DNA of 64,000 bases, taken from positions 1-64,000 of the IMG/VR virus record IMGVR_UViG_3300031857_000005. One strand, written 5' to 3'. Under the pieces are notes generated by a model, which saw only the letters and a list, made by a program, of their open reading frames with translations, was not told where the DNA came from and searched no databases. Positions 3,578 to 63,700 of the stretch are shown piece after piece (the first letter of the stretch is position 1; the number at the start of each line of letters is the position of its first letter). The translations under genes and the position numbers were made by a program.

Positions 3578-3886
3578 ATGAAAATAATTATAACGGAAAA
3601 TAAAAGGGACAGACTGGCGTTAAATTGGTTGAATAATAAATTCGGTAATCTAACTAAGGTTGTTAACTATGATAGAACATTTTATGTTAATAAGGATAAA
3701 AAACCGTTATTTTACTATTATCAAGATGATAAAAATAAGTTTGTTTTTATTGATTACACAAGAATTTGGATATTTTTTGAATCCATTTTTGATATGGAAT
3801 ATGAACAAATACAAGATATTCTAAAAATATGGTTGGAAGAAACCTATAATTTGAGTGGATATTTACCTATTGATTACGGACACTAA
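3578..3886 (+). CDS. leader-family protein (MKIIITE type)
   Basis: start re-assigned to MKIIITENK; TATTTAT at 3565-3571. Confidence 0.75.
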   Translation: MKIIITENKRDRLALNWLNNKFGNLTKVVNYDRTFYVNKDKKPLFYYYQDDKNKFVFIDYTRIWIFFESIFDMEYEQIQDILKIWLEETYNLSGYLPIDYGH

Positions 3887-3906
3887 CCTATAATATAAAA
3901 TAAAGT

Positions 3907-4782
3907 ATGAAAATATTTCTTACCGAAAAACAATTAAAATATTTAAAGTCAAATCTTATTTCAGAGTCAGATGAGGTAAATCAATATGGGTTTACACAGG
4001 ACGAAATGAAACGAATTGAAGAATTTGTTAGAAAAAATGTTAAACAACAATATGAATGGTTAAAAAAAGAAGTTGAGGAGGGTGAGGAACATGCGGAAAT
4101 TTTGGAAAAAATAAAAAGTCATATTAAAAATAATCCTGATATACCTGAAAAATATTTTGATTATATGATTAAAGAATATGAGGGTAAAGTAAAACAATAC
4201 GAAAGAAATAAAAAGAACCTTGAAAATTTTGATTTTGAAGAGTATGTTAAAGATGGTATTGATAGAGATATACACGGAGGAGCATATTCAATGTCTTGGA
4301 ATATCAGAAGCGAAAAATGGGAGAAAGAACAATTAAATAGAAAGTTAACAAAAGAAGACATAACTGATATTTTAGTTACCGCTCTTGAGGGTGGATCCAA
4401 TTATTGGTATTTAATTGATTTACCTGAAAATATAAAATCATATGGGCAATCAAAATCTGAAGCGGTTGGTGAATATGTCTTACGAGGTGGGTCAATTGAT
4501 TTCTACGATAAGGAAGAATATTATGATGTTAGGAGAGCATTAAAAGATGGTGATTACAATATTGGTGATAGTGATGATATGGTTGATGAAAAGAGTTATC
4601 AGGAAGACATTGAAAATACTAAACTTGGACATATTGATATGAACAGAATATTAGAGGCAATAACAAAAATAAAAAGTGAATATCCTGAAGTTTGGAAAAA
4701 TATATTATTGGAAAATGCGGATGCTGGAGATGCCGATGTATTCTTACAACTATGTGTAATGGGTGAAGTTGTTTATGGGTAA
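3907..4782 (+). CDS. leader-family protein (MKIFLTEKQ), acidic cargo
   Basis: 291 aa ORF beginning MKIFLTEKQLKYLKSNLISE. Confidence 0.8.
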   Translation: MKIFLTEKQLKYLKSNLISESDEVNQYGFTQDEMKRIEEFVRKNVKQQYEWLKKEVEEGEEHAEILEKIKSHIKNNPDIPEKYFDYMIKEYEGKVKQYERNKKNLENFDFEEYVKDGIDRDIHGGAYSMSWNIRSEKWEKEQLNRKLTKEDITDILVTALEGGSNYWYLIDLPENIKSYGQSKSEAVGEYVLRGGSIDFYDKEEYYDVRRALKDGDYNIGDSDDMVDEKSYQEDIENTKLGHIDMNRILEAITKIKSEYPEVWKNILLENADAGDADVFLQLCVMGEVVYG

Positions 4783-4800
4783 ATAAAAAATTATAAATTA

Positions 4801-4830
4801 AAAACCCCACTCAAAAGGTGGGGATTTTTT
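4801..4830. terminator. bidirectional intrinsic terminator between convergent genes
   Basis: AAAACCCCAC...GTGGGATTTTT between convergent stop codons. Confidence 0.75.
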
Positions 4831-5377
4831 ATTTAAGTGATAACCACTTTGACTTATAATTTTTGTTAGTTCCACAATACCTACCATACTCATTTACAAT
4901 AGGTCTACCCGTGTTATAACAACCACAAACAACATTCCAGTCACCGTATTTATTATAAAGTTTTCGTAGAAGTTTCATACTTGTCCTAATGTTCAACTCA
5001 ATATCAGTCATAATTTTATGATTTGAATATTTTACTTTATTAATTGAATAAGATGTCATAGGCATAATCTGCATCGGACCCAAAGCCCCAACACAAGAGA
5101 TTCTTTCGGGATTGTACCTCCAATCAAAAGGACCTCTGTATGTTGTTTCTTTATACGCCACATTATATGCAACATACTTAGGAATGTTATATTCATCAGA
5201 GTATTTCTCAATACATTCATACATCCGAATAGAAATTGGTGAATTTGGAATACCTGATCCTTCATTCGTGAATTTACTATTAGATTGAATCTCAATCGTT
5301 GACATACCTGATAAGGTAATAATGGTAACAAGACATCCCATCAAGTATACCAATTTTAAAATGTTGGATACTTTCAT
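4829..5377 (-). CDS. SLT-family lytic transglycosylase with N-terminal signal or anchor
   Basis: KET catalytic Glu region, GALGPMQIMP, NIRTSMKLLRKLYNKYGDW, YNTG. Confidence 0.85.
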   Translation of the reverse strand: MKVSNILKLVYLMGCLVTIITLSGMSTIEIQSNSKFTNEGSGIPNSPISIRMYECIEKYSDEYNIPKYVAYNVAYKETTYRGPFDWRYNPERISCVGALGPMQIMPMTSYSINKVKYSNHKIMTDIELNIRTSMKLLRKLYNKYGDWNVVCGCYNTGRPIVNEYGRYCGTNKNYKSKWLSLK

Positions 5378-5383
5378 AATCTA

Positions 5384-5757: not shown

Positions 5758-5795
5758 TGGTATTTACATTTTGGATCTGAAAGGTATTTATGGTT

Positions 5796-7202
5796 ATGAG
5801 AAAAAATTTAATATTAGAATCAGGATTAAGGGATATTAACAAATTAGCTAAAAGATACCCTAAAGCTAAAATATATTTTCACCAAGATTTAGATGGTGTT
5901 ACTACCGCACTTGCAATGAAACACTATTTGGAGAATAATGGTATTAAAGTTGTTGATGCCGAAATAATCCAATACGGGGATAAAGAATTTTCAGTTAAGA
6001 AATTAGATGCTGAAGGTGATACAATGCCTGTACTGGTAGATTTTGCCCACGGAAAACCAATGTTTGTTATTCATACCGATCACCACGATACTCAAGCCGG
6101 AGTTGAACAAGGAACATCAACAAGTTTTAGATCATCAAGATCGAATGTTGAAACAATATCTCAAACAATATCACCTAAAGATATTTTCTCACCTGAAGAC
6201 ATTACATTAATATCAACTGTGGATTCTGCAGATTATGCAAAACACGATATCGCACCTGAACAAGTGATGAACTACCTATTCAAATTAGATAAGGATAAAA
6301 CATTACAAAGAAATAAAATGTTAATGGGGTTGGTTGTTAATAAACTATTATTAGCATATAAAAATAAACCAGGTTTTCTTGAAGAAATTGTTTTAACCGC
6401 AAATCCATCATTAATGAGTATCCTGAATAATATTAGAGGACAAATGATGAGTAAAGGATACGCTGAGGTTGGAGATCTTGAAAAGAATAAGGAAATGTAT
6501 GTCCAAACGATGAAGTCACATCCTAATGTTAAAATTGATGACAACATTATTGTACAATATGGTGGTGGATCAATGATGAAACCAGGTTCTTATGATAGAT
6601 ACACCCCATTTAGAAATAATCCTGATGCCGACTTCTTAGTTATTGCTTGGCCGTTAGGATTGGTTCAAGCATCCTGTAACCCATTCAAAAAAGAAAGAGC
6701 ACTTAAAGGAGTTAACTTAGGTGAGATTAAAGATGAAGTATTAGGAAAATGGGAATCACAATTAAAAGATAGGGATATTCCATTATCAACAATTAAGTGG
6801 ATATCAGAATCAGGAAAAGGATTTACACCTGAATCTGTTGGGTTCACATATAAAGATTTTAGAGCGTTATACGGAGATAAATTCAAATCAAAAGACGGTA
6901 AAGATTTTATGAGAGATATTGATACGGCAATGTCAAAATCATTTACCGATTTAACTGATGAAGAGATGAGTTTACTTGATAGTGTTACCGTAACTGCTTG
7001 GGACATTATCCAATCAAATAGTGGAGGACATAAATGTATAACTAACATTTCGGGATTAAATTATATGGGTAGAAGTAAAAGACCACCTCAAGGGAAATAC
7101 AAATATAGTTCTGAAAATGAGGACGCTGCGTATGTGAAATTTACTAAAATGATTCAGAATGAATTTGTTAGATTATTGAAAGAGAAAGTTCAAGAAGGTT
7201 AA
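5796..7202 (+). CDS. DHH-family phosphoesterase-like protein
   Basis: YFHQDLDG, LVDFAH, HTDHHD and STVDSAD motifs, C-terminal GGH; TATTTAT at 5785-5791; starts MRKNLILE. Confidence 0.75.
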   Translation: MRKNLILESGLRDINKLAKRYPKAKIYFHQDLDGVTTALAMKHYLENNGIKVVDAEIIQYGDKEFSVKKLDAEGDTMPVLVDFAHGKPMFVIHTDHHDTQAGVEQGTSTSFRSSRSNVETISQTISPKDIFSPEDITLISTVDSADYAKHDIAPEQVMNYLFKLDKDKTLQRNKMLMGLVVNKLLLAYKNKPGFLEEIVLTANPSLMSILNNIRGQMMSKGYAEVGDLEKNKEMYVQTMKSHPNVKIDDNIIVQYGGGSMMKPGSYDRYTPFRNNPDADFLVIAWPLGLVQASCNPFKKERALKGVNLGEIKDEVLGKWESQLKDRDIPLSTIKWISESGKGFTPESVGFTYKDFRALYGDKFKSKDGKDFMRDIDTAMSKSFTDLTDEEMSLLDSVTVTAWDIIQSNSGGHKCITNISGLNYMGRSKRPPQGKYKYSSENEDAAYVKFTKMIQNEFVRLLKEKVQEG

Positions 7203-7556: not shown

Positions 7557-7985
7557 ATGGCTAATAGAAAACTAAAAAGATTTTCGGGAATACTTGTCAA
7601 GTGTGGTAATAAATTTTTACTTTGTAAAAGAAGTCCTGATCAGTCTTCACCTAATATATGGTCGGTTCCTGGTGGTGGTGTTGAGTATGGTGAAAAACCT
7701 AAAGAAACTGCAATTAGGGAGTTTTATGAGGAAACTAATATTGATTTAACTAATGAGATTAATGACATAAGATTAGTTGGTACTTTTAATACATATACTA
7801 AAAATGGTGAAGTTAAAGGGATGATGTATATCTACTATTACCAATCAGATGTAGAGATATATCCTGATTTGGATATGGCTAAAGATGGACACGAACATAG
7901 CGAATGTGGGTACTTTAATTTCATGGATTTACCAATTGATGACCATAAAGACCCATTATTTAGATTAATTTTAACACTTTTGTAA
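7557..7985 (+). CDS. Nudix hydrolase
   Basis: Nudix box PGGGVEYGEKPKETAIREFYEETNI. Confidence 0.9.
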   Translation: MANRKLKRFSGILVKCGNKFLLCKRSPDQSSPNIWSVPGGGVEYGEKPKETAIREFYEETNIDLTNEINDIRLVGTFNTYTKNGEVKGMMYIYYYQSDVEIYPDLDMAKDGHEHSECGYFNFMDLPIDDHKDPLFRLILTLL

Positions 7986-8495: not shown

Positions 8496-8508
8496 TTTAA
8501 TATCTTTG
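8478..8508 (+). promoter_or_regulatory. Bacteroidota-type promoter, ATG 4 nt downstream
   Basis: TTTG-N19-TATCTTTG-aggt-ATG(8513). Confidence 0.75.
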
Positions 8509-8512
8509 AGGT

Positions 8513-8788
8513 ATGAATAAGACGGCATTTAAAATCAGAATTATTAACGAATCGTTTGGAGAGTTACTAAACGAAGTATTTATTGATGAGACACAATTCA
8601 AAATTTTTTTGAAGATGGTTCACGGGTGTTTGGAACTTGAGAATGATTTAAGATTCTTCAACGGAGATACATTCTTAATTAACATCCCATTCCGATTCTT
8701 GAAAGATTCCATTATTGTGACAGGAACTAAAGACATTGATATGGTTGAACCAATCAAAAGTAAAATCGAGGCATTAATAACAAAGTAA
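8513..8788 (+). CDS. hypothetical protein
   Basis: 91 aa ORF directly after a promoter motif. Confidence 0.7.
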   Translation: MNKTAFKIRIINESFGELLNEVFIDETQFKIFLKMVHGCLELENDLRFFNGDTFLINIPFRFLKDSIIVTGTKDIDMVEPIKSKIEALITK

Positions 8789-8791: not shown

Positions 8792-9241
8792 ATGAAAAAG
8801 TTAATTTATTTTATCACCATTATGTTGGTGATTGTTTCTTGTCAAAAGACTAACCCACCACCTTACCCACCACCAATTCCACCACAACCTATTGTGACGG
8901 ATACAACGGTGATTGATACCGCAACAAACCTAATTGGTGAGACATGGGTTATTGATGGTTACCGAGTTAATGGTATTGGTGCAATTATTACGATTAGTGA
9001 TACACTTGTCTTTAACACAATTAATTCGTATACTTTTAATGGTAATACCGCAACCTACTCGTTTTATACAACCGCATCTGCGTATTCACTAACAATGAAC
9101 TACACACCTTGGGGTAATTTAACTGGACCAATATTTGAAGGTAATTTAACTAGTGGAGTAATTCTCGGACTTAAATTCACCGACATTACAATGGGTTCAG
9201 GGAATCAAACGGATTATTACCTGTGGATGCATAGAATATAA
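8792..9241 (+). CDS. putative lipoprotein with Pro-rich linker
   Basis: MKK-hydrophobic-VSC lipobox-like signal; PPPYPPPIPPQP. Confidence 0.7.
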   Translation: MKKLIYFITIMLVIVSCQKTNPPPYPPPIPPQPIVTDTTVIDTATNLIGETWVIDGYRVNGIGAIITISDTLVFNTINSYTFNGNTATYSFYTTASAYSLTMNYTPWGNLTGPIFEGNLTSGVILGLKFTDITMGSGNQTDYYLWMHRI

Positions 9242-9330: not shown

Positions 9331-9359
9331 TATTTATGATATTTATAAATAAAAAAGTT

Positions 9360-10196
9360 ATGAATATCAGAAGAATTTTAATTTCCGAACAAGAAAAAAA
9401 AGACATATTATCGCAATATGGTGTAAAAAAAGATGTTATCTCTGAACAAACATTGAATGATGATGGAACATATACAATTAAGAATCTTCAAGAGTTTACA
9501 GTACACGCAATTCAGTATGGGGGTAGTGCACCTAGAGTTTACATTAAAAAAGGTGAGACAGTGAAAAAAAATACCGACGGTAAAAGTCTATCCGTAGATG
9601 TTTACTATAAAAAAGAAGACTCAACAGGTAAATTTACAGGTCCTTTGGTTAAATCAGGGTCTAAAGGGAAATTTATTTGTGGTGATTATTTATTAAGATT
9701 TGAAGGTAGTGAACAAACTTACGAACAAATTGTAATGACTGGACAACCATTTAAAACTGCAATGAATAAATTATTCTGTGATGGAAATAAATTAAAATCT
9801 GATAAAGTAGTTGGAGGTGGTGGTGAAGAACAAAAACCAAAAACAGATAATAGATGTAAATTTGTTGAGAAAGAATTCACAAATCAGCAAGTTTGTTATA
9901 TTCCGAATGATAAAACTTGGATGTATGCAAAAACTGATGATGGAAAATGGTACACAACTAAACAAACTGATAAAAAAACATGGTGTGAATTGACGACACC
10001 TAAATTCCAAAAGGCTATTGATAAATTAAATATTGAATGTAAAGGATTGGAACCAATATCAAAGTTGGAACTTAAACCAATTGGTACTATTGAAACTGAA
10101 AAGAATTTAGAATTGGTACCATCAAAACAACAAATGATTGATAAAGGTTTAGAGGCGGCTAAGTTTGTATCAAATCTACAAAACAGACCACAATAA
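9360..10196 (+). CDS. leader-family protein (ISEQEK..IL type)
   Basis: MNIRRILISEQEKKDILSQY...VISE; TATTTAT at 9340-9346. Confidence 0.75.
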   Translation: MNIRRILISEQEKKDILSQYGVKKDVISEQTLNDDGTYTIKNLQEFTVHAIQYGGSAPRVYIKKGETVKKNTDGKSLSVDVYYKKEDSTGKFTGPLVKSGSKGKFICGDYLLRFEGSEQTYEQIVMTGQPFKTAMNKLFCDGNKLKSDKVVGGGGEEQKPKTDNRCKFVEKEFTNQQVCYIPNDKTWMYAKTDDGKWYTTKQTDKKTWCELTTPKFQKAIDKLNIECKGLEPISKLELKPIGTIETEKNLELVPSKQQMIDKGLEAAKFVSNLQNRPQ

Positions 10197-10224: not shown

Positions 10225-10252
10225 ATTTAATTCTTTTTCATATCTTTGTGGT

Positions 10253-10642
10253 ATGGAAAATACATTATATATCGTAAGAGGAATACCAGGTAGTGGTAAA
10301 TCAACATTTGCAAAAACTTTAGGTGGACAACACTATGAAGCGGATATGTTCTTCATTGATGAGAATGGTGTGTATAATTTTGATTTCACTAAAATAAAAG
10401 ATGCGCATCAATGGTGTCAGAGTTTTGTTAAATCTGATATGATATTGGAATATCCCAAGATTGTGGTTTCAAATACATTCACACAAGAGTGGGAGATGCA
10501 ACCATACATTGATATGGCGAAAGAACATGGGTATAAAGTATTCACTATTGTAGTTGAGAATAGACACGGAGGTGTAAATGAACATAATGTTCCCGAACAA
10601 GTTTTAGAAAATATGCGTAATCGTTTTGAAATTAACCTTTAA
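10253..10642 (+). CDS. P-loop kinase (AAA_33 / polynucleotide kinase-like)
   Basis: IVRGIPGSGKST Walker A, VVSNTF, HNVPE.V...M; TATCTTTG at 10241-10248. Confidence 0.85.
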   Translation: MENTLYIVRGIPGSGKSTFAKTLGGQHYEADMFFIDENGVYNFDFTKIKDAHQWCQSFVKSDMILEYPKIVVSNTFTQEWEMQPYIDMAKEHGYKVFTIVVENRHGGVNEHNVPEQVLENMRNRFEINL

Positions 10643-11904: not shown

Positions 11905-11930
11905 ATCACAACTCCTTTATATTTATATGT

Positions 11931-13181
11931 ATGAAGAAAAATTTAATCATTACTGAAAATCAACTTGAGATTATTGTAAATAATCTCTTACTGAATGAAG
12001 CCGTTGGAGTTCCTGAAGGAATCATTGAATCGGCTGAAGAACTATATGAAATCATATTAAACCTATTAAAAGGTATGGATGATTACGACACAACACAAAC
12101 ATTTACTGAAGATAATTTAGATTTAACAATATCTGATTATAAAATACACGAATTAGAGTTAGCAGTTCAAGTTCACGAAATGGATGAATATGATGGACCA
12201 TTCACTATGATATCAGCCGGTGTTGCAAATCAATTTAATTTTGATAGAAAACTACTAATGAAGGTTCATAAACAGGATAACACAATTGAGTTACAATTAC
12301 ATTTTGCATCAAATGGGGATGATTGGGATTCCCAAGACCCTTATAATTACTTTACTAATGATAGAGTTCAATTAATATCTGTAATTGCTCACGAAATTAA
12401 ACATAAGTTTGATAAACAAAAAAAGACAACTGACTTGATAGGGAAAGATGCTGATTATCAAGCATATGCAAGTCAAGGGTTAAACTTCGGAATTCCGGTT
12501 ATTAGTGAATTTATGAGATATAGTTATTTCATTCAATATGTTGAAAATCTTGTTAGACCAACTGAAATGGCAACAAGAATGAAATTAACTGGAGTAACAA
12601 GAGAAAAGTTTAGAGAATTTTTTGAAAATGATAGTGTTGTTAAAGAACTAAAAGAAATTAGAGATTTTAGTTTTGAACATTTTATGGAAGAATTACATAA
12701 TCAAATGGATCGTGTGGATGGTTTATTAGAACACGCAGATGTGGATTATGAAAATATGACTGAAGAGGAAAAAATAAAGGTAGTTATGGATATAGTTTAT
12801 ATTAATCTTATTAGTGCTAAAAGAGATATTTTTGATAAAATGACGGATAGTGTTGATAGTGAAATGGCTAATTTTATGAGAATGTTAGGTATGGGTGTTA
12901 AGCGTGAGAACGATGAAGGATTGGAAAAAGTTAGACATAAATATTTAAATCAACTTGCCAAATATCGTAATAGAGAAAGTCAGTTCTTTGTTGATGAATG
13001 TGAAAGATTTAACTATGTTGCAACAAAATTAATTAAACGACTTGTAAAAATATATTCACTTATTCCTGACGAAAAAGAACAAACCAACGAATCAATTCTT
13101 AATTGGGAGTTACACCAACAAATAATGGAGAAAAAATACGGAAAAAGAAAAATAGAAAAAGAGTTTAAATTTAAACGGTAA
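11931..13181 (+). CDS. leader-family protein (IITENQ type), 416 aa
   Basis: MKKNLIITENQLEIIVNNLLLNE; TATTTAT at 11920-11926; internal AHEIKH (HExxH-like). Confidence 0.8.
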   Translation: MKKNLIITENQLEIIVNNLLLNEAVGVPEGIIESAEELYEIILNLLKGMDDYDTTQTFTEDNLDLTISDYKIHELELAVQVHEMDEYDGPFTMISAGVANQFNFDRKLLMKVHKQDNTIELQLHFASNGDDWDSQDPYNYFTNDRVQLISVIAHEIKHKFDKQKKTTDLIGKDADYQAYASQGLNFGIPVISEFMRYSYFIQYVENLVRPTEMATRMKLTGVTREKFREFFENDSVVKELKEIRDFSFEHFMEELHNQMDRVDGLLEHADVDYENMTEEEKIKVVMDIVYINLISAKRDIFDKMTDSVDSEMANFMRMLGMGVKRENDEGLEKVRHKYLNQLAKYRNRESQFFVDECERFNYVATKLIKRLVKIYSLIPDEKEQTNESILNWELHQQIMEKKYGKRKIEKEFKFKR

Positions 13182-13226: not shown

Positions 13227-13595
13227 ATGAAAAAACTATTATTATTTATTCCACTAATTACACTATTATCATTTAAATCATCAGAAAAAATCTACACAGG
13301 AACCGCATCTTATTACGGACAACATTGGACAGGTAGAAAGACATCATCAGGAGAACTATTCCACAAAGACAGTTTAACTGCGGCTCATAAGTACTTTAAG
13401 TTCGGAACAATTGTGAAAGTAACAAACACAAGTAATGATTCTGTTAGATATGTTAAGATCAACGACAGGTTACCAAAATCATCAAGTTTTGTGATTGATT
13501 TGAGTTACGGAACCGCAAAGGAACTTAACTTCATTAGAAAAGGAATCACCAAAGTGACACTTGAACCAGTTGACACAGTTCCGATTAAGAAATAA
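13227..13595 (+). CDS. rlpA: RlpA-family (DPBB) lytic transglycosylase with signal peptide
   Basis: GTASYYG, TSSGE.F, TAAH, FGTIVKVTN, KINDR.P, IDLS. Confidence 0.9.
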   Translation: MKKLLLFIPLITLLSFKSSEKIYTGTASYYGQHWTGRKTSSGELFHKDSLTAAHKYFKFGTIVKVTNTSNDSVRYVKINDRLPKSSSFVIDLSYGTAKELNFIRKGITKVTLEPVDTVPIKK

Positions 13596-13634: not shown

Positions 13635-13667
13635 GTTTAATCAGATATTTATTAATAAATTTGTAAA

Positions 13668-13964
13668 ATGAAAAAAGTAATAAGACTAACCGAATCAGAC
13701 TTGACAAGAATAATCCAAAGGGTTATTACCGAATCCAAAAAGAAACAAAGTAAATCTGAAATATTAAAGATGTCAAAAGAAGAATTGGAAGATGTTTATG
13801 GTGAATTGGAAATAAAGGGTGAATACCATGGAAAAAAAGGAACATTCCACCATTTTAAAAAAGCTATGTTTGATGTTGTTTGTAGTTTTAGAACTGACGA
13901 TACAACACCATCAGGTTTAAAAAGAAATACAAAAGGAATTAAAGTTAAAAATTTAGATATTTAA
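13668..13964 (+). CDS. leader-family protein (LTESDL type)
   Basis: MKKVIRLTESDLTRIIQRVITE; TATTTAT at 13646-13652. Confidence 0.8.
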   Translation: MKKVIRLTESDLTRIIQRVITESKKKQSKSEILKMSKEELEDVYGELEIKGEYHGKKGTFHHFKKAMFDVVCSFRTDDTTPSGLKRNTKGIKVKNLDI

Positions 13965-13968: not shown

Positions 13969-14301
13969 ATGAAAAAAGTAATAAGATTAACCGAATCAGA
14001 TTTAACAAGGATTGTTAAACGAGTGATCAATGAAAATAAGAAAAAACCATCAAATGAAAAAATTGAGGATGTGTTAAAAAAACTTATGGATGATTACATT
14101 GGTGAGGATGAATGGAAAGGTGGTTATAAAGAATCGTCAGATAAACCATATGACAGATTTATGGTTAGTTTTAAACAATCGGGGGATGACACCGAAGAGA
14201 TTGCTGAAGAAATCATTGAGAAACTAAATAATAAATTTGAAAGTAACTTATTTAAACTTGGTAACGCAAGTAAAAACTCATTTTGGTTTTATATAAAATA
14301 A
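13969..14301 (+). CDS. leader-family protein (LTESDL type)
   Basis: MKKVIRLTESDLTRIVKRVINE; cargo unrelated to neighbours. Confidence 0.8.
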   Translation: MKKVIRLTESDLTRIVKRVINENKKKPSNEKIEDVLKKLMDDYIGEDEWKGGYKESSDKPYDRFMVSFKQSGDDTEEIAEEIIEKLNNKFESNLFKLGNASKNSFWFYIK

Positions 14302-14738: not shown

Positions 14739-14742
14739 TGTT

Positions 14743-51622: not shown

Positions 51623-51662
51623 TATGTTTTTATTAAAATGTGATATTTATAAATAAAAACCC

Positions 51663-52028: not shown

Positions 52029-52048
52029 ATTTTGTGGTATTTATATAT

Positions 52049-53511: not shown

Positions 53512-53522
53512 TGAGTAATACT

Positions 53523-54218
53523 ATGAACCTACAAGAACATATAAGAAGAGTATTAAGGGAAGAAAAAAGATTCTCACCATTTATCAGTAGAAGATTACCA
53601 GAGGATGAGATAAATACATACTTCAATGAAGTTAAGAATCGTTTAATGGGAATGATAACAAGTGATAAGTCATCTATGATGGAAAAAGATGAATTTAAAC
53701 AATTTATCATTACATACACAATTAATTTCATAATGGAAAACTATTATGATACATTTCCTGAAATGACGGACTTCTATGAAAAATTATTTGATGATTTATA
53801 TGAATATTATAATAATGAAATGGATGAATCTTATGAGAGTATAAATAATATGAACCTACAAGAGAACATAAGAAAAGTATTGAGGGAAGAAAATAATATA
53901 CCGTCATATATTAGAAGAAGACTCGGTATTTTACAGGAGTATATGGATGATTTGGATCCAAACGATATTTGTAAATACTGGGATTATGATGAGGTTGATG
54001 GATTCACAAATGAGGTATTATCAGAGATAGTTAGAATTATAGTTAATAGTATTCCTGAAATACATTCAGAAGATTGGTTTAATGCTTATGATGAAGTACT
54101 TGGTGTGTTAACCGATTTAAATTACCACTTGGAAATTAACGACTTTTTTATTCACACACTTGATAATTGTGATAATTATGTAAATGAATCAATAGATAGA
54201 AATGAAAGAATTAATTAG
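53523..54218 (+). CDS. fusion of two leader-plus-cargo units
   Basis: MNLQEHIRRVLREE at 53523 and MNLQENIRKVLREE in frame at 53850. Confidence 0.8.
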   Translation: MNLQEHIRRVLREEKRFSPFISRRLPEDEINTYFNEVKNRLMGMITSDKSSMMEKDEFKQFIITYTINFIMENYYDTFPEMTDFYEKLFDDLYEYYNNEMDESYESINNMNLQENIRKVLREENNIPSYIRRRLGILQEYMDDLDPNDICKYWDYDEVDGFTNEVLSEIVRIIVNSIPEIHSEDWFNAYDEVLGVLTDLNYHLEINDFFIHTLDNCDNYVNESIDRNERIN

Positions 54219-54636
54219 ACATATAATAAAAGAAGAAACATCAAGAAAAACTAAACTATTAAAAATGGTTGATAGTATTGGGGTTCTAAACACGGCAGAT
54301 GTTGTTGGTGGGGTGGAAAAATTATTTGATATATTAGGAAACGAGTTCTTCACCGACTCCAATAAGATTGATATTATTAAAGAAATTATAGAATCAAATA
54401 ATGGGGAATATATCTCATTGAGTGAACTAGGTGAAGAACCAATATTGGTAGATGATGACGGTGTAGAGTTTTCACAAATAGAAATATTATATTCAACAGA
54501 TGTAATGTTATATCATTATGAAAAAGAAACAGGAAAAGATCATGGAGAATCATTTATGGATTATGTACAATTACGAAGTTATATAATAGATGATATCTTT
54601 AATATGTTGGTTGACTATTATATAAATAACAATTAA
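54202..54636 (+). CDS. leader-family protein with VGG module
   Basis: MKELIRHIIKEE; TADVVGGVEKLFDILG. Confidence 0.8.
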   Translation: MKELIRHIIKEETSRKTKLLKMVDSIGVLNTADVVGGVEKLFDILGNEFFTDSNKIDIIKEIIESNNGEYISLSELGEEPILVDDDGVEFSQIEILYSTDVMLYHYEKETGKDHGESFMDYVQLRSYIIDDIFNMLVDYYINNN

Positions 54637-54641
54637 GTGGA

Positions 54642-55073
54642 ATGAAAGAATTAATCAGACATATAATAAAAGAAGAAACCAACCGAAAGACAAGGATGGT
54701 AAAAATCATTAATAATATGGGAATTGATAAAACCATAGAGATGATAGGGGGATTTGATAAGTTTGAGAAAATAATGGATATAAATGATCCGATGGATTAC
54801 CTACATCTATTTAACGGAATGGATGAAGTCGAATCAAAACAATACGAAAAATCTTTTATATATCGTTTTAACCCAAAACGCAATATAATGATGGTTAACC
54901 CTAATATAGAAAGAGTATATATCAATCAATATGAAATATGGAATGTTCTAAGGCGTGAATTTGATTTAAATAATAATGAAGCTCTTGATGCCGTAAATGA
55001 ATGGTTAAAAGATGAATATGGTGTAGAAGATTTTATGTTATTAGTTTCAAGCGCTTTAGATACAATTAAATAA
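54642..55073 (+). CDS. leader-family protein with IGG module
   Basis: MKELIRHIIKEE; TIEMIGGFDKF. Confidence 0.8.
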   Translation: MKELIRHIIKEETNRKTRMVKIINNMGIDKTIEMIGGFDKFEKIMDINDPMDYLHLFNGMDEVESKQYEKSFIYRFNPKRNIMMVNPNIERVYINQYEIWNVLRREFDLNNNEALDAVNEWLKDEYGVEDFMLLVSSALDTIK

Positions 55074-55531
55074 TGAAAGAATTAATTAGACATATATTAA
55101 GGGAAGATCAAAACAGAGAAGAAAGACTCAGGTTAAAAATTATCTCCATTATTAGAGATGCAGGACTTTCCCAAGCAATAAGTGTGATAGGAGGGGTTAA
55201 TAATTTGATTAGAATATTGGGGGTAGAAAACTCAATGAAATTTCTCAATTTGTTTAATGATATGGATGAGATAATTTTTGTTGATGAATACAATGATGAC
55301 GATGAGTATACATTATTTAGATTCAGGGAAGGATTAAATTATTTTGTCCTAAGAAATGATACAGGAACATTATTCATCTCCAAAGATATTATGGATGTAT
55401 TAAAGACTATGGAAAATGATGATTATTTCTATATTTATCTATGGATTAAAAGATGGGTTAAAAATCAATACGGAATAGAACCAAGAAATATCTTAACAAC
55501 TGCTGGCGGAGATTTAGAAACGATGGGATAA
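55073..55531 (+). CDS. leader-family protein with IGG module
   Basis: MKELIRHILRED; AISVIGGVNNLIRILG. Confidence 0.8.
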   Translation: MKELIRHILREDQNREERLRLKIISIIRDAGLSQAISVIGGVNNLIRILGVENSMKFLNLFNDMDEIIFVDEYNDDDEYTLFRFREGLNYFVLRNDTGTLFISKDIMDVLKTMENDDYFYIYLWIKRWVKNQYGIEPRNILTTAGGDLETMG

Positions 55532-55532
55532 C

Positions 55533-55880
55533 ATGAAAGAATTAATTAGACATATAATAAAGGAGGAAACAAAGTTACCGGCATTAATCAGAAGAAGGGT
55601 ATCTGAAGATGAGTTAGAACGAGAGTTTAAAGAATCGTTAAAAGATGCATTGGCAATGATTAAGAGAGGAAAAGACGATAGTTTACAATCCTTTACATAC
55701 CAACGAATGTTAGAACATCTAATATGGGTAACAATTAGTATGTTAATTGATTCGATCCATTATGAATTATTCTCAACAATCCCTGAAAATATAAATTGGT
55801 ATGATGAAGTATTCAAAATGTTAGAGAAACATTACAGAAGTAGAATTGTTGATGAATACATGAAACATTTTAGATTATAA
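55533..55880 (+). CDS. leader-family protein with RRR module
   Basis: MKELIRHIIKEE-TKLPALIRRRV. Confidence 0.8.
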   Translation: MKELIRHIIKEETKLPALIRRRVSEDELEREFKESLKDALAMIKRGKDDSLQSFTYQRMLEHLIWVTISMLIDSIHYELFSTIPENINWYDEVFKMLEKHYRSRIVDEYMKHFRL

Positions 55881-55888
55881 TTAAGTAT

Positions 55889-56302
55889 ATGAATATACAA
55901 GAAAACATAAGAAGAATATTAAGGGAAATGAGTGATGACTTATATGTTATACAGGATGAAGATAATCTTTTTTTACAAAGTCTTCCTCGTTCTATTAAAA
56001 GAAGAATAACCCATAAAGATTTAAAATGGTTTGATAATAGAATTGATGATTATATTCGTACAGTAACACACAAAGTCGGTTATAATTTATTTAAATCAAT
56101 GGTTCTTGAGGGTATTATCAATGAATTTGTAACTGTATTTAAACTTAATGAATTTTCAGATGAACAAAATGAATGGGGGTTTTTTGAGTATGAATCAGAA
56201 GAATCAAAAAAGGCATTTGATTTGTTTTCTAAATTAAAACCATTTCTTGATGATAAATATGGAAAAAGAATACGACAAGGATGGGAACAAAAAATGAGAT
56301 AG
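55889..56302 (+). CDS. leader-family protein
   Basis: MNIQENIRRILRE; LPRSIKRRI. Confidence 0.8.
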   Translation: MNIQENIRRILREMSDDLYVIQDEDNLFLQSLPRSIKRRITHKDLKWFDNRIDDYIRTVTHKVGYNLFKSMVLEGIINEFVTVFKLNEFSDEQNEWGFFEYESEESKKAFDLFSKLKPFLDDKYGKRIRQGWEQKMR

Positions 56303-56549
56303 AATTAAAGGATTTATTATAATAAAAGAGTATAGACTCAAATCATTCATTCCATCTTACCGTTCGTAAACTCACTACAGATTCCATTCATAATTTTATC
56401 CTATACTCTTTGTTTACAGTAAACAGGTTAGTGTAAACAACTATAACCAAATAAGGATACAACCTTATAATCCATCATTATAAGTCTCCTACCTTATAAT
56501 GTAAAATACTATTAACATTATGTAGGGTATTTGTAAAAAGTATTTCCCC

Positions 56550-56612
56550 CATTTAAATCACTCCACTTCGTTCCGTTCTCCCTCATTTAAATCACTACAC
56601 TTCGTTCCGTTC
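56550..56612. repeat. 29-bp direct repeat x2 in the long non-coding region
   Basis: CATTTAAATCACT(C/A)CACTTCGTTCCGTTC at 56550-56578 and 56584-56612. Confidence 0.9.
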
Positions 56613-58742: not shown

Positions 58743-59084
58743 CAATACAAAGGTACGGATTATAATTGACACCACAAAACATTCCCCCATATATTTTATG
58801 TGAGTTATTAACAATGGGGTTGTTTACATATGTAAACTGATAGGGGGAGGTATTACTTATGAACATATGTTAATAACTTAATATCCCCTCCCTCAGATAG
58901 TGGCATACCCCCTATATTGGGGATTACCCCCTCCCCCCTCCCGTATGCCCCCCATATATGACATTTTGACAGGTAAAAAGGGGGGACAATCCCAAAAACA
59001 AAGTATTCGTAAAAAAAATTTTGGAAAAAATTTTTGGTATTTTTCCATTTCTATATTATAGGAATTTTTTATTATATTTGTATT

Positions 59085-59585
59085 ATGGAAAAAATCTGTA
59101 AAAAGTGTGAAACAGAAAAAGAATTGTCTTACTATAGAAAGGGGAGGACTACTTGTAAATTATGTGAAAATAAAATTAGGTATATACAAAAACAGGAAAG
59201 AAGAAAAGTGGATCCCCAATATGACAAAGAAATTAAGTCATATGATGTAATGAGAAAAAGGAAAAAAGAGAAGGAGAATCAACTAACGGGGTTTATTCAG
59301 AAGATGAGACAATCCATTAGAAAATCATTCAAAAGACAAGGGTATACAAAGAACTCAAGAACATATGATATACTTGGGGAATCTTGGGGGAATGTGAAAT
59401 TATATTTTGAGTCTTTATTCCAAGATGGAATGACATGGGATAATCATGGGGAATGGGAGATTGATCACATTATTCCATTATCAACATCCAATTGTGAAGA
59501 AGATGTTATTCGTCTATGTCATTACTCCAATCTTCAACCCCTATGGAAAAAGGATAATAAATTGAAGGGGTGTAAAATTCTGTAG
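59085..59585 (+). CDS. HNH endonuclease with N-terminal Zn finger
   Basis: CKKC...CKLC; GMTWDNHGEWEIDHIIPLS...HYSNLQPLW..DN..KG; TATATTTG-tatt-ATG. Confidence 0.85.
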   Translation: MEKICKKCETEKELSYYRKGRTTCKLCENKIRYIQKQERRKVDPQYDKEIKSYDVMRKRKKEKENQLTGFIQKMRQSIRKSFKRQGYTKNSRTYDILGESWGNVKLYFESLFQDGMTWDNHGEWEIDHIIPLSTSNCEEDVIRLCHYSNLQPLWKKDNKLKGCKIL

Positions 59586-59978
59586 TGTTGTTTATCCCCC
59601 TATATATGTAAAAAAATTCTGGAAAAATTTTTGATAAAATCGGGTATTATGTATATCATTATGATTATGTCTAAACAAAAAAATAAAAAAAGAAATATTA
59701 GGATAGGGGATAATATAATAAGGGTTCCTTCTAAATCAATTAAATTTACTGACTTATATAATGAGTTTGAATTTGCTACTACCAAAGTGGGGGATAAACA
59801 TTATATATTTGAATCATCTTCAGGATATGTAATTGGTCAAGGGGATAGTTACACAAGAGCAAGAAATAACTCAAAGGAATTTCTTAATAGGACTAATGGT
59901 AGATTTTCAGAATTGATTAATTATTTTTTAACCCCTCCAACTAAGTAGGGTTTTTTATTTCCCGTATATTTATCTTAT

Positions 59979-60275
59979 ATGAAAATTATTATCACCGAGA
60001 ATCAAAACGATTTAATAAGACGATACCAATTATTCAAAGATGAGGTATATAAACAAATGGGAACTTCAAACCCTTGTTATTATAATGATTACTTTGATTT
60101 TGACAGATACAAACGGGATATGATAAATTCCTCAATTAATGAGGTTGTTGGTGATTTGGGTATTGATGAAAGAATATTGACAACATTCAAAGGTGAATTA
60201 TTAAATGAGTTACTTGGTATTATTAGAAGATACTACAATAAATTCCTTAAGGAGAACTGTCGTCCAAGATGGTAA
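59979..60275 (+). CDS. leader-family protein (MKIIITENQ)
   Basis: TATTTAT at 59967-59973; LIRR...PCYY module. Confidence 0.8.
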   Translation: MKIIITENQNDLIRRYQLFKDEVYKQMGTSNPCYYNDYFDFDRYKRDMINSSINEVVGDLGIDERILTTFKGELLNELLGIIRRYYNKFLKENCRPRW

Positions 60276-60293
60276 TGTAATATATTTATCTAT

Positions 60294-60620
60294 ATGAAGA
60301 TTATTATAACGGAAGAACAATATGACAATTTATATTTAAGGAGAAGATTGTCTGATATAATGGATGAAGGATTATTCTTAATTGATAATGCCCATAATCT
60401 TTATAGGGGTACTGACTTTTGTGAACATTACCCCACTCTTAAGATATTCATGGAAGGTTTTATTGAGGACATTATAAATCAATATTATAATATGACTGGT
60501 GATGATATACGGGAATTTATCTATGATTATATTGGGCAAGAAAACTTTATTGATATGTTGCTTGATGTTCATGGTGAGGAGATTGAAACCTTATATAATG
60601 AAATAACAAAAGATTGTTAA
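60294..60620 (+). CDS. leader-family protein (MKIIITEEQ) with RRR module
   Basis: TATTTAT at 60283-60289; LYLRRRL...FCEHY. Confidence 0.8.
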   Translation: MKIIITEEQYDNLYLRRRLSDIMDEGLFLIDNAHNLYRGTDFCEHYPTLKIFMEGFIEDIINQYYNMTGDDIREFIYDYIGQENFIDMLLDVHGEEIETLYNEITKDC

Positions 60621-60719
60621 TATAACATCACCCCCCATCTCTAATTTATCCCCCATATCTCAAAAAAAAATTTCCAGAAAAATTTTCAGAAAATCCGAGT
60701 ATTTATAATAAAAGATACT

Positions 60720-61058
60720 ATGAAAAAATTTATTATAACAGAAGAAGAAAAAAGTAGAATCTTGGGTATGCACAAATCATACGCATCAATGATTAACGAA
60801 CAAGTGTTAACCGATGAAGAAGTACAAAATCGTTTAGCGGTTTTATATATAATGAAAACACAAAAATTAGATAAACTAAAGTCAGAAAACTATTTAAAAA
60901 ATGAGGGTGGTTATGACAACTTTATTACAGGATTTGATGGACAAAATGAGCCTTATATGGATTGGTTAAAATCTATAGGGTTAGAAAGAGGTGATGTTTA
61001 TATTGATGGTGGTAATAGAGATCGTGTTTTAACTAAATTAAAAGAACTTGAAAAATAA
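60720..61058 (+). CDS. leader-family protein (ITEEEK.RIL.MH type)
   Basis: MKKFIITEEEKSRILGMHK...INE; TATTTAT at 60700-60706. Confidence 0.8.
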   Translation: MKKFIITEEEKSRILGMHKSYASMINEQVLTDEEVQNRLAVLYIMKTQKLDKLKSENYLKNEGGYDNFITGFDGQNEPYMDWLKSIGLERGDVYIDGGNRDRVLTKLKELEK

Positions 61059-61530: not shown

Positions 61531-61546
61531 TTGATATTTATTTAAT

Positions 61547-61861
61547 ATGAAAAAGATTATTAAATTAACGGAATCAGATTTAACAAGAATTGTTAATCGT
61601 GTAATTAACGAGGATTATTCTTCTAATTTTAAAAGAAGGTTTAAATCAATTAATGATGAAATATTGGAGTTGATTGATAGTGCTAAGGATGAGGTTGATG
61701 AGGATGATTTTGATGACTATTATGATTATTTGGAGGGTCTTGTTTATTGGGTTGTACAAGAACTACAATCAAGATATGGAGATGATGATGATTTTTGGTA
61801 TGATGACGAGGACGAAATAATTGAGTACATTAAAGATAAGTATGATGAGTACTTGGAATAA
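61547..61861 (+). CDS. leader-family protein (LTESDL type)
   Basis: MKKIIKLTESDLTRIVNRVINE; TATTTAT at 61535-61541. Confidence 0.8.
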   Translation: MKKIIKLTESDLTRIVNRVINEDYSSNFKRRFKSINDEILELIDSAKDEVDEDDFDDYYDYLEGLVYWVVQELQSRYGDDDDFWYDDEDEIIEYIKDKYDEYLE

Positions 61862-61873
61862 ATAAAATAAGTT

Positions 61874-62413
61874 ATGAACAGAAGCTATAGTAAAATCAGG
61901 CATATACAAGAATCTAATTTAAAATTGGAAAAAAGATTCTTAAATGAACAAATAACAACGGGAACAACAACGGGAACAACAACGGGAACAACTCAAGTTG
62001 ACATTAATGAAGAACAAGGTATAACTCCTTCGTGGGAATCAAAATACACCGAATGGGCGAATAATAAATCAGGCAATCCCGAATTGGCAATGAAACTAAT
62101 GTCAAGATATTGGGATTTAAAAAATCATCCTGAAATGCCTGTTAAGTACAAAGATTTTAATAATTTAACTGACGCTAACGAACTACAAGATCTTATTGAT
62201 GAAATGGAAGAGGCGGTAATAATTAACAAACTGAATCAAGACATTACAAGAGTAAATCATTTTGGGGATTATCATGATGGTAGATATCAATCCGATTATC
62301 ATAAAAAACATGATATAAGTGTTGGTCCTGAGGCTAAAAAAGAGAGAGAAAAAAGACAAGAAGAAAGAAGACGAGAAGAAGATAGAAAATGGTTTGAAAG
62401 AATGAGACACTGA
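61874..62413 (+). CDS. leader-family protein (SKIRHIQESN type) with TTGT repeats
   Basis: MNRSYSKIRHIQESNLKLEKRFLNE; 12-bp unit ACAACGGGAACA x3 at 61955-61990. Confidence 0.75.
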   Translation: MNRSYSKIRHIQESNLKLEKRFLNEQITTGTTTGTTTGTTQVDINEEQGITPSWESKYTEWANNKSGNPELAMKLMSRYWDLKNHPEMPVKYKDFNNLTDANELQDLIDEMEEAVIINKLNQDITRVNHFGDYHDGRYQSDYHKKHDISVGPEAKKEREKRQEERRREEDRKWFERMRH

Positions 62414-62550
62414 ATATGAAATAAACATTACCCCCATTCCTAATAAGAGTGGGGTTTTTTGTTTTCTGCCTTTTATGTGTTTTTTTGTCCCGTTCCCGAC
62501 TTCGTCGGTTATTTTTTGTTTGGATGATATATTTATAAATAAAATTAATT

Positions 62551-63357
62551 ATGAAACATATTTTAAACGACATATCTTTGGAAGACAAGAAGAGAATCCT
62601 TGAACAACATGACGGTGGAAAAAAATTGGTTATTGAAAACTTTAATAAATTGGTTAATAACAAATTGGGTACCGTAAAGGTTTTGGTTGAACAAGATGAC
62701 GAGTTCTTAAAGACTGACTGGGTTCAGACAAGTTATGTAACCCCATTGTTAACCAATGGTTATTCTCAAGTTGCTGAAATAGATCTTCCTGATGGTACAT
62801 ACAAAATGGGAGGTAGTGGATATCAAATTAATATTAACGATTCCACTGATAAAGAAACTGGATATTCATTAATTGTTCAGAGTGGAATTAGAGGTGAATG
62901 GGAAGGTGATATAACAATTACATCAAAAAAACCAAGTAAAAATTATGCTGGTATATTCTTTAAAAATGTTGGATATACTGCACCTGAAAAAACTATTCAA
63001 ACAGGACAAACTCAAACTTTATCAAGTAAGGTATCAACTGAAGGACTTAAAAATGTTTCCGACTCAATGATACAATCCCCACCATTTAAAGGTTATTATA
63101 GTGGTTATGTAATTGGTGGGACTTTTAATGGTGTAAATTATGAATGGGATTTTAATGGTGTTGAGGGTATGTCAGGAGTTAGAGGTATGGTTGATGGACA
63201 GATTATTTGTGATAATAATACTGGTTTAAATAAACAAACAAAAAAGGAAATCACAGATGCTATTAACCCAGGATTTTGGCTTGGTTTTTATAGTTCACAA
63301 TCAAAATTTGTGTGTTATATGACAACAAATAATACCCCTAAAGTGGTGACATTTTAA
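62551..63357 (+). CDS. leader-family protein (EDKKRILEQH type)
   Basis: MKHILNDISLEDKKRILEQH...VLVE; TATTTAT at 62530-62536. Confidence 0.8.
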   Translation: MKHILNDISLEDKKRILEQHDGGKKLVIENFNKLVNNKLGTVKVLVEQDDEFLKTDWVQTSYVTPLLTNGYSQVAEIDLPDGTYKMGGSGYQININDSTDKETGYSLIVQSGIRGEWEGDITITSKKPSKNYAGIFFKNVGYTAPEKTIQTGQTQTLSSKVSTEGLKNVSDSMIQSPPFKGYYSGYVIGGTFNGVNYEWDFNGVEGMSGVRGMVDGQIICDNNTGLNKQTKKEITDAINPGFWLGFYSSQSKFVCYMTTNNTPKVVTF

Positions 63358-63379
63358 ATAAATAAATAAAAACAAAAAA

Positions 63380-63700
63380 ATGAAAAAAGTAATTAGATTA
63401 ACCGAATCAGATTTAGTCCGAATAGTTAGAAGAGTAATTAAAGAAGGGGTAACCGTAGTAAACCCTTGGTCGGATATTGAAAGTGTCGATAAAGGAGATA
63501 CTATGAAAGTAACTTCTAAAGATGGTGCCATTGATCATTTTAAGAATGGAAAAAGATGGACTGGATATATTGGATACAATATTATACAAAATCCAAGACA
63601 GGTACAACTTGATCAATCAGGTGCTATGAATGTTGTTTCATTTGACCCAACAAGAAAAACCGTAACATTCCAAAACGGAGTTGTAATTGGACCGGCATAA
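63380..63700 (+). CDS. leader-family protein (LTESDL type)
   Basis: MKKVIRLTESDLVRIVRRVIKE. Confidence 0.8.
   Translation: MKKVIRLTESDLVRIVRRVIKEGVTVVNPWSDIESVDKGDTMKVTSKDGAIDHFKNGKRWTGYIGYNIIQNPRQVQLDQSGAMNVVSFDPTRKTVTFQNGVVIGPA

Follow-up and report, generated by a model that had tools for sequence, protein, structure and literature searches.

Why should dozens of phage genes, followed by cargos of many kinds, begin with the same few short protein sequences? The question is raised by a stretch of 64,000 nucleotides (nt), positions 1 to 64,000 of the virus record IMGVR_UViG_3300031857_000005 (304,365 bp), which comes from an uncultured phage of about 300 kb. The whole stretch is called the window below. 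It has 30% G+C and about 129 open reading frames (ORFs), and almost all of its genes lie on the plus strand. An earlier note, made from the sequence alone, had described about 40 of these genes as a late promoter, a conserved N-terminal leader, and a variable cargo, and had read them as an arsenal of proteins packaged in the capsid. The analysis presented here leads to a similar view. With a probability of roughly 0.6, the leaders act as T4-type capsid-targeting propeptides and load a large and varied set of proteins into the phage head. This model is favoured because it explains together the peptide conservation, the N-terminal position, the fixed glutamate, the exchange of leaders, the restriction to phages, the promoter, and the operon placement.

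Short leaders conserved as peptides

The leader genes in the window number 38, close to the earlier estimate, and are spread over 20 units headed by the motif TATTTAT. The gene starts that had been listed do encode the leaders ascribed to them; those at 16543, 16995, and 37823 lie on the minus strand, and the one at 36410 is a GTG codon. At least four recurrent leader types had been proposed, and all four were recovered. Type 1 (seven genes) reads MKK[VI]I[RK]LTES[DE]L.R[IL][IV].R[VI]I.E, and type 2 (seven genes) reads MKIIITE.Q. Type 3, the largest class with 19 genes, takes the forms MKELIRHI[IL]KEE and MNLQE.IRR[IV]LREE, with a variant MNLQE.I.RI.SMMGL, and type 4 (three genes) contains [ST]EE.K.RIL..H. 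To these may be added the leader MNRSYSKIRH, which is carried by one window gene (61874) and recurs in nine distinct copies in the window and the fetched loci. The 38th leader gene, 43993, is doubtful. Type-1 leaders have 22 residues, and those of types 2 and 3 have 11–15. The leaders are charged amphipathic helices and have no hydrophobic core of the Sec, Tat, or lipoprotein kind. Small genes with lipoprotein-like signal peptides (a hydrophobic stretch followed by Cys), recognised by eye only, are present in the window at 8792–9241, 13227–13595, 26313–26624, and 28830–29099, and their signals contrast with the charged leaders.

As a chance control, 12-mer identities were compared pairwise among the 111 window proteins of at least 70 residues. 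Pairs with at least 7 of 12 identities numbered 111 for the N-terminal 12-mer, 6 for residues 15–27, and 0 at residues 30, 45, and 55. Residues 15–27, where the six similar pairs remain, correspond to the second half of the type-1 leader. The similarity, which is confined to the N-terminus, is far above chance.

The type-1 leader was followed beyond the window by searching IMG/VR with a profile made from its seven type-1 proteins. More than 594 pattern matches were found among the matches listed; 340 were confirmed, and 77 viral loci were fetched (contigs of up to 322 kb, all with 28–36% G+C; loci are designated by L and a number below). In these loci, the leader was N-terminal in 128 of 129 ORFs, and the 98 distinct type-1 proteins, of 51–338 residues, had cargos without common similarity. 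Positions 1–3, 7–10, 12, and 22 are invariant or nearly so, and the remainder of the protein diverges completely. Conservation stops exactly after E22, which is invariant (100 of 100 sequences); position 20 is I, V, L, or M, position 21 is free, and residues 23–30 are unconserved. The fully conserved Leu7 is written with six different codons, Ser10 with TCN and AGT, and Arg18 with AGA, CGT, and CGA. Because invariant residues use varied synonymous codons, the type-1 leader is selected as a peptide and not as DNA; conservation of the 5' ends at the DNA or RNA level was rejected as the selected feature.

A 30-column profile of the type-1 leader matched 9,001 clusters (E ≤ 1e-3; clusters at 50% identity among 1.84 billion representative proteins), nearly all aligned from residue 1. 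Cellular genomes, sampled as one genome for each of 185,579 bacterial and archaeal species, gave three weak matches, all on metagenome-assembled contigs. The leader is thus essentially absent from these cellular genomes, and a host-derived signal was rejected as its source.

Promoters and the head module

According to the earlier note, TATTTAT stands just upstream of the first gene of most clusters. In the window, ATATTTAT occurs in 37 copies, against 21.5 ± 4.7 in shuffled sequences, and the arrangement TATTTAT-N4-ATG was observed 8 times with 1.0 expected. A copy is found no more than 60 nt upstream of 19 of the 38 leader genes; for other genes, the count is 6 of 91 (within 40 nt; Fisher p = 8e-8). 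Each of the 18 plus-strand leader genes without a motif overlaps its predecessor in a motif-headed unit or starts no more than 22 nt behind it, and the minus-strand gene 16217–16543 stands in the same relation to 16546–16995. Since the motif-less genes follow so closely, all leader genes can be assigned to the 20 TATTTAT-headed units. Terminator-like hairpins bound several of these units (18 hairpins in 44–64 kb, where 6.1 would be expected). The sigma-70 consensus was not enriched in the window (137 sites against 133 expected).

The same motif was then counted at head genes, in protease-anchored head loci and in other fetched loci carrying these genes. At a distance of 13–23 nt from the ATG, it precedes the prohead protease gene in 79 of 82 loci, the gene of a 239-residue core protein in 76 of 81, the scaffold gene in 20 of 20, the portal gene in 38 of 65, and a conserved 486-residue gene of the structural module in 14 of 15. 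Downstream genes of the head operons lack it. Head loci and the window agree on an extended consensus, (A/G)ATATTTAT(A/T)...AAAA. Because it precedes the protease, core, scaffold, and portal genes across loci, TATTTAT is the head-gene promoter of this phage lineage. It is presumably a late class as well; what the earlier note called a late promoter is, in the genomes, a promoter shared with head genes, and its timing would follow from this co-regulation.

A second promoter class serves other genes. A Bacteroidota-style box, TAnnTTTG, is found 11 times, against 2.1 expected, with its end exactly 4 nt from the ATG of a non-leader gene downstream. Boxes of this kind lie at 8501–8515, 10241–10255, 14731–14745, 15292–15306, 17042–17056, 22640–22654, 25533–25547, 34633–34647, and 59073–59087. 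Over 78 leader loci, host-type boxes precede 2 of 123 type-1 genes, 3 of 127 type-2 genes, and 256 of 1786 other genes, and they are nearly absent from all head genes counted. Many TATTTAT boxes likewise end 4–6 nt before the ATG. The spacings of both boxes imply leaderless or near-leaderless messenger RNAs and two disjoint promoter classes.

The phage's own head module was reached by walking from locus L007 with exact-protein look-ups, across contigs that overlap by 7.8–12 kb with 100% identical DNA; three assemblies had to be joined for this path. Contigs of the phage turn up again in many JGI and ENA samples. L007 begins at contig position 62,102 and equals the window over 62,102–64,000 at 1899 of 1899 bases. 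About 72 kb past the end of the window lie Terminase_6N, Portal_T4, a 238-residue core protein, Peptidase_S77 (L174:17642–18373), and DUF4494, followed by two type-1 leader genes, the scaffold gene (L174:19389–20744), and the start of the capsid gene. The two leader genes (72 and 115 residues) stand between the protease operon and the scaffold and have their own TATTTAT 15 nt upstream. The layout of L085 matches this module. A ClpB-like AAA+ protein is encoded a few kb upstream of it (L173:12677–14731). A related module in L079, a 261-kb contig, contains Portal_T4, Peptidase_S77 (E = 2e-23), a gp22-like scaffold, and Gp23 (E = 1e-72). The L079 protease has more than 600 close relatives in IMG/VR, and 80 head loci were taken. 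A further type-1 protein is kept beside structural genes in L079, L064, L082, L085, and L087. A general clustering of leader genes in head modules was rejected, with nine type-1-like genes in 5 of the 80 head loci; most leader genes are located in separate arrays, away from head modules.

The capsid protein offers a view of what the protease may cut. T4 gp23 loses 65 N-terminal residues (PMC9958956), the last of which is, in the T4 record, the Glu of FLTE. This Glu65 aligns with S-F-L-I-N-E|A of the jumbo-phage capsid protein, where LINE is conserved in 40 of 40 capsid proteins of the lineage. The end of the type-1 leader, V-I-(N/K/S)-E, resembles this predicted capsid maturation site, L-I-N-E. 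Cleavage after Glu is common to the S77-type proteases of T4, phiKZ, and SPN3US; the targeting propeptides of T4 have 10–20 residues (PMC5694885). In at least 7 of 8 leader families, the conserved block ends in [ILV]-x-E, so that a putative prohead-protease motif stands at the end of the candidate propeptide.

The mechanism that we infer, from docking and cleavage to retention in the head, ejection, and the roles of the cargos, would run as follows. Late in infection, TATTTAT promoters, which also drive the portal, core, protease, and scaffold, would express dozens of small proteins, each starting with a short amphipathic leader of one of at least four classes. The leader would dock the protein on the scaffolding core during prohead assembly, and the protein would thus come to lie inside the shell. 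The S77 prohead protease, cutting after Glu, would remove the leader at its terminal [I/V/L]-x-E, as it would cut the major capsid protein at L-I-N-E. Mature cargos would stay beside the DNA and be ejected together with it when the next cell is infected. With an address that is short and detachable, recombination could put any leader on any cargo, and a large repertoire with fast turnover would result. The capsid-loading idea of the earlier note thus receives partial support from the head promoter, the portable leaders ending in Glu, the phage's own S77 protease, and the LINE-like site, and the facts on T4 that it drew upon agree with the literature (PMC9958956, PMC3012670, PMC5694885).

Exchangeable leaders, diverse cargos and competing explanations

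The leaders are exchanged between cargos at a fixed point. Homologues of the 48611 cargo, 67–75% identical, bear a type-2 leader in place of type 1, and the junctions read ..RVINE|NQEEV.. (type 1) and ..RILLE|NQEEV.. (type 2). The junction Glu is invariant in 41 of 41 aligned sequences. A type-2 copy of this cargo is present in the same genome, past the window (contig 72090–72572). A second case is cargo family A, which comprises 54202, 54642, 55073, 46421, 47205, and the inner modules of 42375. Within the window its leader is of type 3; elsewhere, it is of type 1 in L001 (six tandem genes), of type 2 in L023, L045, and L070, and an MNLQ./MSIKE variant in L014 and L049.

Such families invite a plainer explanation, in which these are ordinary tandem-duplicated genes whose N-terminal helix happens to be the best-conserved piece, with conserved 5' ends favouring recombination and no targeting at all. 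Many type-3 genes are indeed full-length paralogues or fusions that share cargo domains (54642 and 55073 align over their full length, E = 1e-20), and tandem arrays occur in the window (52049–56302) and at L001:7542–10480. The model of 54642 is also a single compact fold in which the leader forms the first turns. To this extent, the earlier description of the cargos as otherwise unrelated was overstated; it is right for type 1 but not for the many type-3 cargos that are paralogues or fused modules. Plain duplication is nevertheless difficult to reconcile with one 22-residue sequence on about 100 dissimilar cargos and in 9,001 clusters, or with key leader positions that are near-invariant amid complete divergence elsewhere. 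Free variation among synonymous codons shows that it is not DNA homology that has been preserved, orthologous cargos change their leader class at a fixed residue, and the leader is unpacked in the model of 48611. We therefore regard duplication without targeting as quite improbable.

The AlphaFold2 (AF2) models show what follows the leaders. For 48611, residues 1–20 have a predicted local distance difference test (pLDDT) score below 50, and the C-terminal domain scores 85–92; in this model, the leader is unpacked and lies outside the cargo fold. The model of 54642 has a mean pLDDT of 90. Foldseek found no match for either model in the PDB at E ≤ 0.001, and the matches in BFVD were uncharacterised proteins of uncultured phages only. 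Structure prediction, suggested earlier as a way to characterise the cargos, has thus given confident domains but no fold relative of known function. A Pfam match was obtained for 4 of 101 type-1 proteins: Tae4, PG_binding_1, DUF6576, and DUF4316. The Tae4 peptidoglycan amidase cargo is at L030:5878–6549 (55 bits), and the PG_binding_1 cargo is in L080; two cargos predicted to act on the cell wall would fit ejected proteins. Otherwise, Pfam and PHROGs gave almost no matches on leader proteins, and PHROGs added nothing useful. No paper on DUF6576 was found in the literature searched.

Prochlorosins and the Nif11/NHLP families show the same formal architecture: each genome has numerous paralogues, in which a conserved leader gives way abruptly to a hypervariable remainder. 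The leader proteins might accordingly be leader-core precursors resembling those of ribosomally synthesised and post-translationally modified peptides (RiPPs), or substrates of a dedicated export system. Here, however, the proteins have 51–536 residues and cargos (50 to more than 500 residues) that greatly exceed a peptide core in length; the two cargos that were modelled are confident domains. The boundary is [ILV]-x-E and not of the Gly-Gly type, the leaders are confined to phages and essentially absent from cellular genomes, and the head-gene promoter is used. A search that was not exhaustive showed neither a modifying enzyme nor a transporter beside the arrays. Precursors of this kind are disfavoured and appear very improbable.

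Fused proteins form a group of their own. Leader-like segments are found inside the ORF called from 53511 (at residue 114) and, as degenerate copies, in 42375, 47205, and 52777. The database proteins P0084, P0085, P0087, P0089, and P0097 are single ORFs of the form leader-cargo-leader-cargo. Their inner type-1 leader mostly has another residue in place of its Met and is otherwise intact. Such ORFs could be polyprotein-like substrates or recent fusions.

Several observations weigh against capsid targeting and have to be set beside the evidence for it. The motif [ILV]-x-E is common in this proteome, at 1.1–8.7 per 100 residues in head proteins, and its presence alone therefore proves little; what counts is that it closes the conserved block and marks the swap junction. 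The sharp stop after (I/L/V)-x-E that had been described is exact in type 1 only. In type 3, it is approximate, the conserved block ending in ..KEE(T), and conservation often continues past the Glu (..EET, followed by family-specific blocks). In type 2, it is weaker, for conservation reaches Q9, two residues past E7, and a second [ILV]-x-E is missing from some genes. The type-3 leader of the 54642 model opens a long helix (H2-26) that runs into the cargo, with pLDDT rising from 65 to 83. Since the first helix enters the cargo and conservation passes the Glu, part of this leader may be structural. Internal copies are well conserved in 53511, P0084, P0087, and P0089, so that a leader need not be N-terminal to be kept. 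At 13646–13670 and 48589–48613, both promoter boxes stand in tandem (GATATTTATTAATAAATTTGTAAAATG) before the type-1 genes 13668 and 48611, which may be expressed from host-type and head-type promoters alike. The window cargos are mostly acidic (28 of 37 with an isoelectric point (pI) below 6, median pI 5.0). The type-1 leader, with 22 residues, is at or just past the T4 range (PMC5694885). A tblastn search of 50,697 GenBank phage records (E ≤ 10) with the proteins of 48611, 42375, and 61547 returned nothing, although the low-complexity filter may hide short matches, and no cultured carrier of the leaders was found in it. A virion with dozens, or even more than 100, different packaged proteins would also, to our knowledge, surpass anything documented.

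Some of these points suit the main rival of capsid targeting, according to which the leaders are docking tags for some other destination or partner and do not require cleavage. Candidates would include a chaperone or adaptor, a membrane or cell-pole site, another part of the virion, or a compartment built by the phage. A tag so strictly conserved, so portable, and so specific to phages calls for a conserved partner, but these properties do not tell which one; copies of the leaders persist within fused proteins, the type-3 leader runs on into a cargo helix, and several leader classes could mean several destinations. Yet no other partner can be seen. The motif at the end of the tags is the one that the head protease would be expected to cut, and it has the same form as the site predicted in the capsid protein; the genes share the head-gene promoter, and type-1 genes stand between the phage's own protease and scaffold genes. 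A membrane route is further opposed by the lack of a Sec, Tat, or lipoprotein core in the leaders, such signals being carried instead by the genes at 8792, 13227, and 26313. Another destination therefore seems unlikely, though it deserves more attention than the other explanations. An extension of capsid targeting is about as tentative: the leader classes might form a sorting code for place, copy number, or order of exit in a large capsid, or for a different destination, with leader exchange turning any gene into a delivered protein.

Gene arrays, related systems and significance

The leader genes are described here in window order; all are on the plus strand unless stated otherwise. The first unit holds two type-2 genes, 3578–3886 (102 residues; TATTTAT at 3565–3571) and, 20 nt after it, 3907–4782 (291 residues). 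A type-4 gene of 278 residues (9360–10196; TATTTAT 9340–9346) and a type-2 gene of 416 residues (11931–13181; TATTTAT 11920–11926) follow. The next unit consists of three type-1 genes, 13668–13964 (98 residues), 13969–14301 (110 residues), and 14306–14653 (115 residues), with TATTTAT at 13646–13652 and a host-type TAAATTTG box 4 nt before the first ATG. On the minus strand, with TATTTAT at 17002–17008, are two type-3 genes of the MNLQE.. form, 16546–16995 (149 residues) and, downstream of it, 16217–16543 (108 residues). Two further type-3 genes face each other: 36410–36829 (139 residues, GTG start; TATTTAT 36399–36405) and, on the minus strand, 36813–37823 (336 residues; TATTTAT 37830–37836). 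One unit is headed by an endolysin-like gene without a leader (38994–39590; TATTTAT 38959–38965). Its stop is overlapped by the start of the type-2 gene 39590–39889 (99 residues), which is followed by another type-2 gene, 39886–40431 (181 residues).

The unit that begins with the type-3 gene 42375–43985 (536 residues; TATTTAT 42363–42369) has four genes. The first contains two internal degenerate modules of leader plus family A, at about residues 235 and 388. The second, 43993–45363 (456 residues), is the doubtful case, its N-terminus resembling a leader type of other loci. It is followed by the type-3 gene 45376–45723 (115 residues) and by 45723–46130 (135 residues), which has the type-3 variant ..RIKSMMGL.E. 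A type-3 gene with a family-A cargo start, 46421–47200 (259 residues; TATTTAT 46408–46414), precedes a unit of two type-3 genes, 47205–48242 (345 residues, with an internal degenerate leader at about residue 237; TATTTAT 47192–47198) and 48239–48568 (109 residues). Three genes, each with its own motif, come next: the type-1 gene 48611–49135 (174 residues, with DUF6576 and a beta-rich C-terminal domain; TATTTAT 48589–48595), the type-3 gene 50176–50934 (252 residues, MNLKE.. form; TATTTAT 50165–50171), and the type-1 gene 51663–51926 (87 residues; TATTTAT 51644–51650).

A unit of eight genes at 52049–56302 lies just 3' of a terminator-like hairpin (52002–52022). It opens with 52049–52780 (243 residues; TATTTAT 52038–52044), which carries the type-3 variant ..RIQSMMGL.E. 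This gene is followed by 52777–53511 (244 residues), whose N-terminus is a degenerate form of type 3 and which has a leader-like segment inside, at about residue 137. The type-3 gene 53523–54218 (231 residues) consists of two fused modules, with a second complete leader starting with Met about 110 residues in. Three type-3 genes with family-A cargos come next, 54202–54636 (144 residues), 54642–55073 (143 residues), and 55073–55531 (152 residues). The type-3 gene 55533–55880 (115 residues) has a cargo of the '..LP..IRRR' family, and 55889–56302 (137 residues, type 3 of the MNIQE.. form) closes the unit.

Toward the end of the window, two type-2 genes, 59979–60275 (98 residues; TATTTAT 59967–59973) and 60294–60620 (108 residues; TATTTAT 60283–60289), are followed by the type-4 gene 60720–61058 (112 residues; TATTTAT 60700–60706). 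The type-1 gene 61547–61861 (104 residues; TATTTAT 61535–61541) shares its unit with the MNRSYSKIRH-type gene 61874–62413 (179 residues). After terminator-like hairpins at 62432–62454 and 62496–62508, the last unit contains the type-4 gene 62551–63357 (268 residues; TATTTAT 62530–62536) and the type-1 gene 63380–63700 (106 residues), with another such hairpin behind it (63719–63745). The array runs at least 10 kb further (L007, contig 64610–74013), with about 15 more genes of types 1–4.

Other genes of the window include a glutamine synthetase-like gene (650–1855; Gln-synt_N and Gln-synt_C), a metabolic gene unusual in a phage, which is followed by two methyltransferases (1845–2678, with DUF3310, and 2675–3523, N6_N4_Mtase). 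A nitroreductase gene (50993–51622; phrog_18935, E = 1e-52) stands alone among the leader-gene units. Further enzymes are NUDIX (7557–7985), RNA ligase (18585–19715), and SPFH/Band 7 (27880–28830), and a weak DHH-like match was obtained at 5790–7202. The segment 56303–57800 has few genes, low GC skew, and scattered ..GAGGGGATT repeats, with no Rfam match; a 34-nt tandem duplication, with copies 94% identical, lies at 56545–56612. An Rfam scan of the whole window returned no family. No transfer RNA (tRNA) gene was found in the 64-kb window; 24 tRNA genes in two arrays are located at L171:2799–14563 (about contig 102–114 kb), and L171 also gave a doubtful transfer-messenger RNA call at 20026–20428. 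When 25 kb of the window was compared with GenBank phages by megablast, no match was found. By one 470-residue protein, the closest GenBank relatives are uncultured huge phages of 635–735 kb. The host is probably a member of the Bacteroidota, because of the TAnnTTTG boxes in the window and an SprB/CHU_C gene just past it. The region L165:4289–9316 (about contig 75–80 kb) encodes this protein, which has 775 residues and whose type IX secretion sorting domain points to such a host, and also a GAF-PAS histidine kinase with an adjoining response regulator.

Among known systems, the internal proteins IPI, IPII, and IPIII of T4, together with Alt, come closest: diverse small proteins share a short N-terminal propeptide that ends in hydrophobic-x-Glu (PMC3012670, PMC9958956, PMC5694885). 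In T-even phages, the diversity of cargos behind a constant tag has already been noted (same sources). A head module of the T4 type (Portal_T4, S77 protease, gp22-like scaffold, Gp23) completes the likeness, and expression is presumably late here too. The differences are mainly of scale. T4 has a handful of such genes and one leader class; here there are 38 genes in 64 kb, more beyond the window, and at least four to eight unrelated leader classes in one genome. The type-1 leader has 22 residues, compared with the targeting sequence of about 10 residues in the internal proteins of T4 (PMC9958956). Leader classes exchange on one cargo, tandem leader-cargo fusions occur, and the host is probably a member of the Bacteroidota. 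Packaging and cleavage, established for T4, are proposed here from the sequences.

The jumbo phages phiKZ, 201phi2-1, and SPN3US have about 50 head proteins, many of them ejected, and a related protease that cuts after Glu; in SPN3US, the conserved N-termini of the diverged paralogues gp53 and gp54 have been read as targeting signals (PMC5694885). Their propeptides, however, mostly have 80–130 residues, and their motif is S/A/G-x-E, with a small residue at P3 in place of the I/L/V found here. They are without a family of short interchangeable tags over dozens of genes. In encapsulins and bacterial microcompartments, a short terminal amphipathic helix on unrelated cargos docks inside the shell during assembly. 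The proposed working of the leaders is alike, but there is no homology, no maturation protease removes those tags, and the shells contain no genome and deliver nothing to cells. The leaders are thus probably a greatly expanded variant of the T4 principle of capsid targeting. No earlier account of such leader families in jumbo phages was found in the literature, which is not proof of absence.

If this is so, the 22-residue motif would be a label, readable from sequence, for the virion-delivered proteins of abundant uncultured jumbo phages, a class for which the only other route is the proteomics of cultured phages. Thousands of candidate first-strike proteins, such as anti-restriction proteins, takeover factors, and cell-wall enzymes, would be marked by it. 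A detachable address would explain the quick turnover of the arsenal and would provide natural tags for packaging foreign proteins in large capsids. Should the leaders also form a sorting code, the more than 9,000 type-1 clusters would be the largest known pool of phage-carried proteins, possibly rich in anti-defence factors. Whether or not the destination is the head, a peptide this conserved on more than 9,000 virus-confined clusters needs explaining, and the reason why jumbo phages have so many small orphan genes becomes testable.

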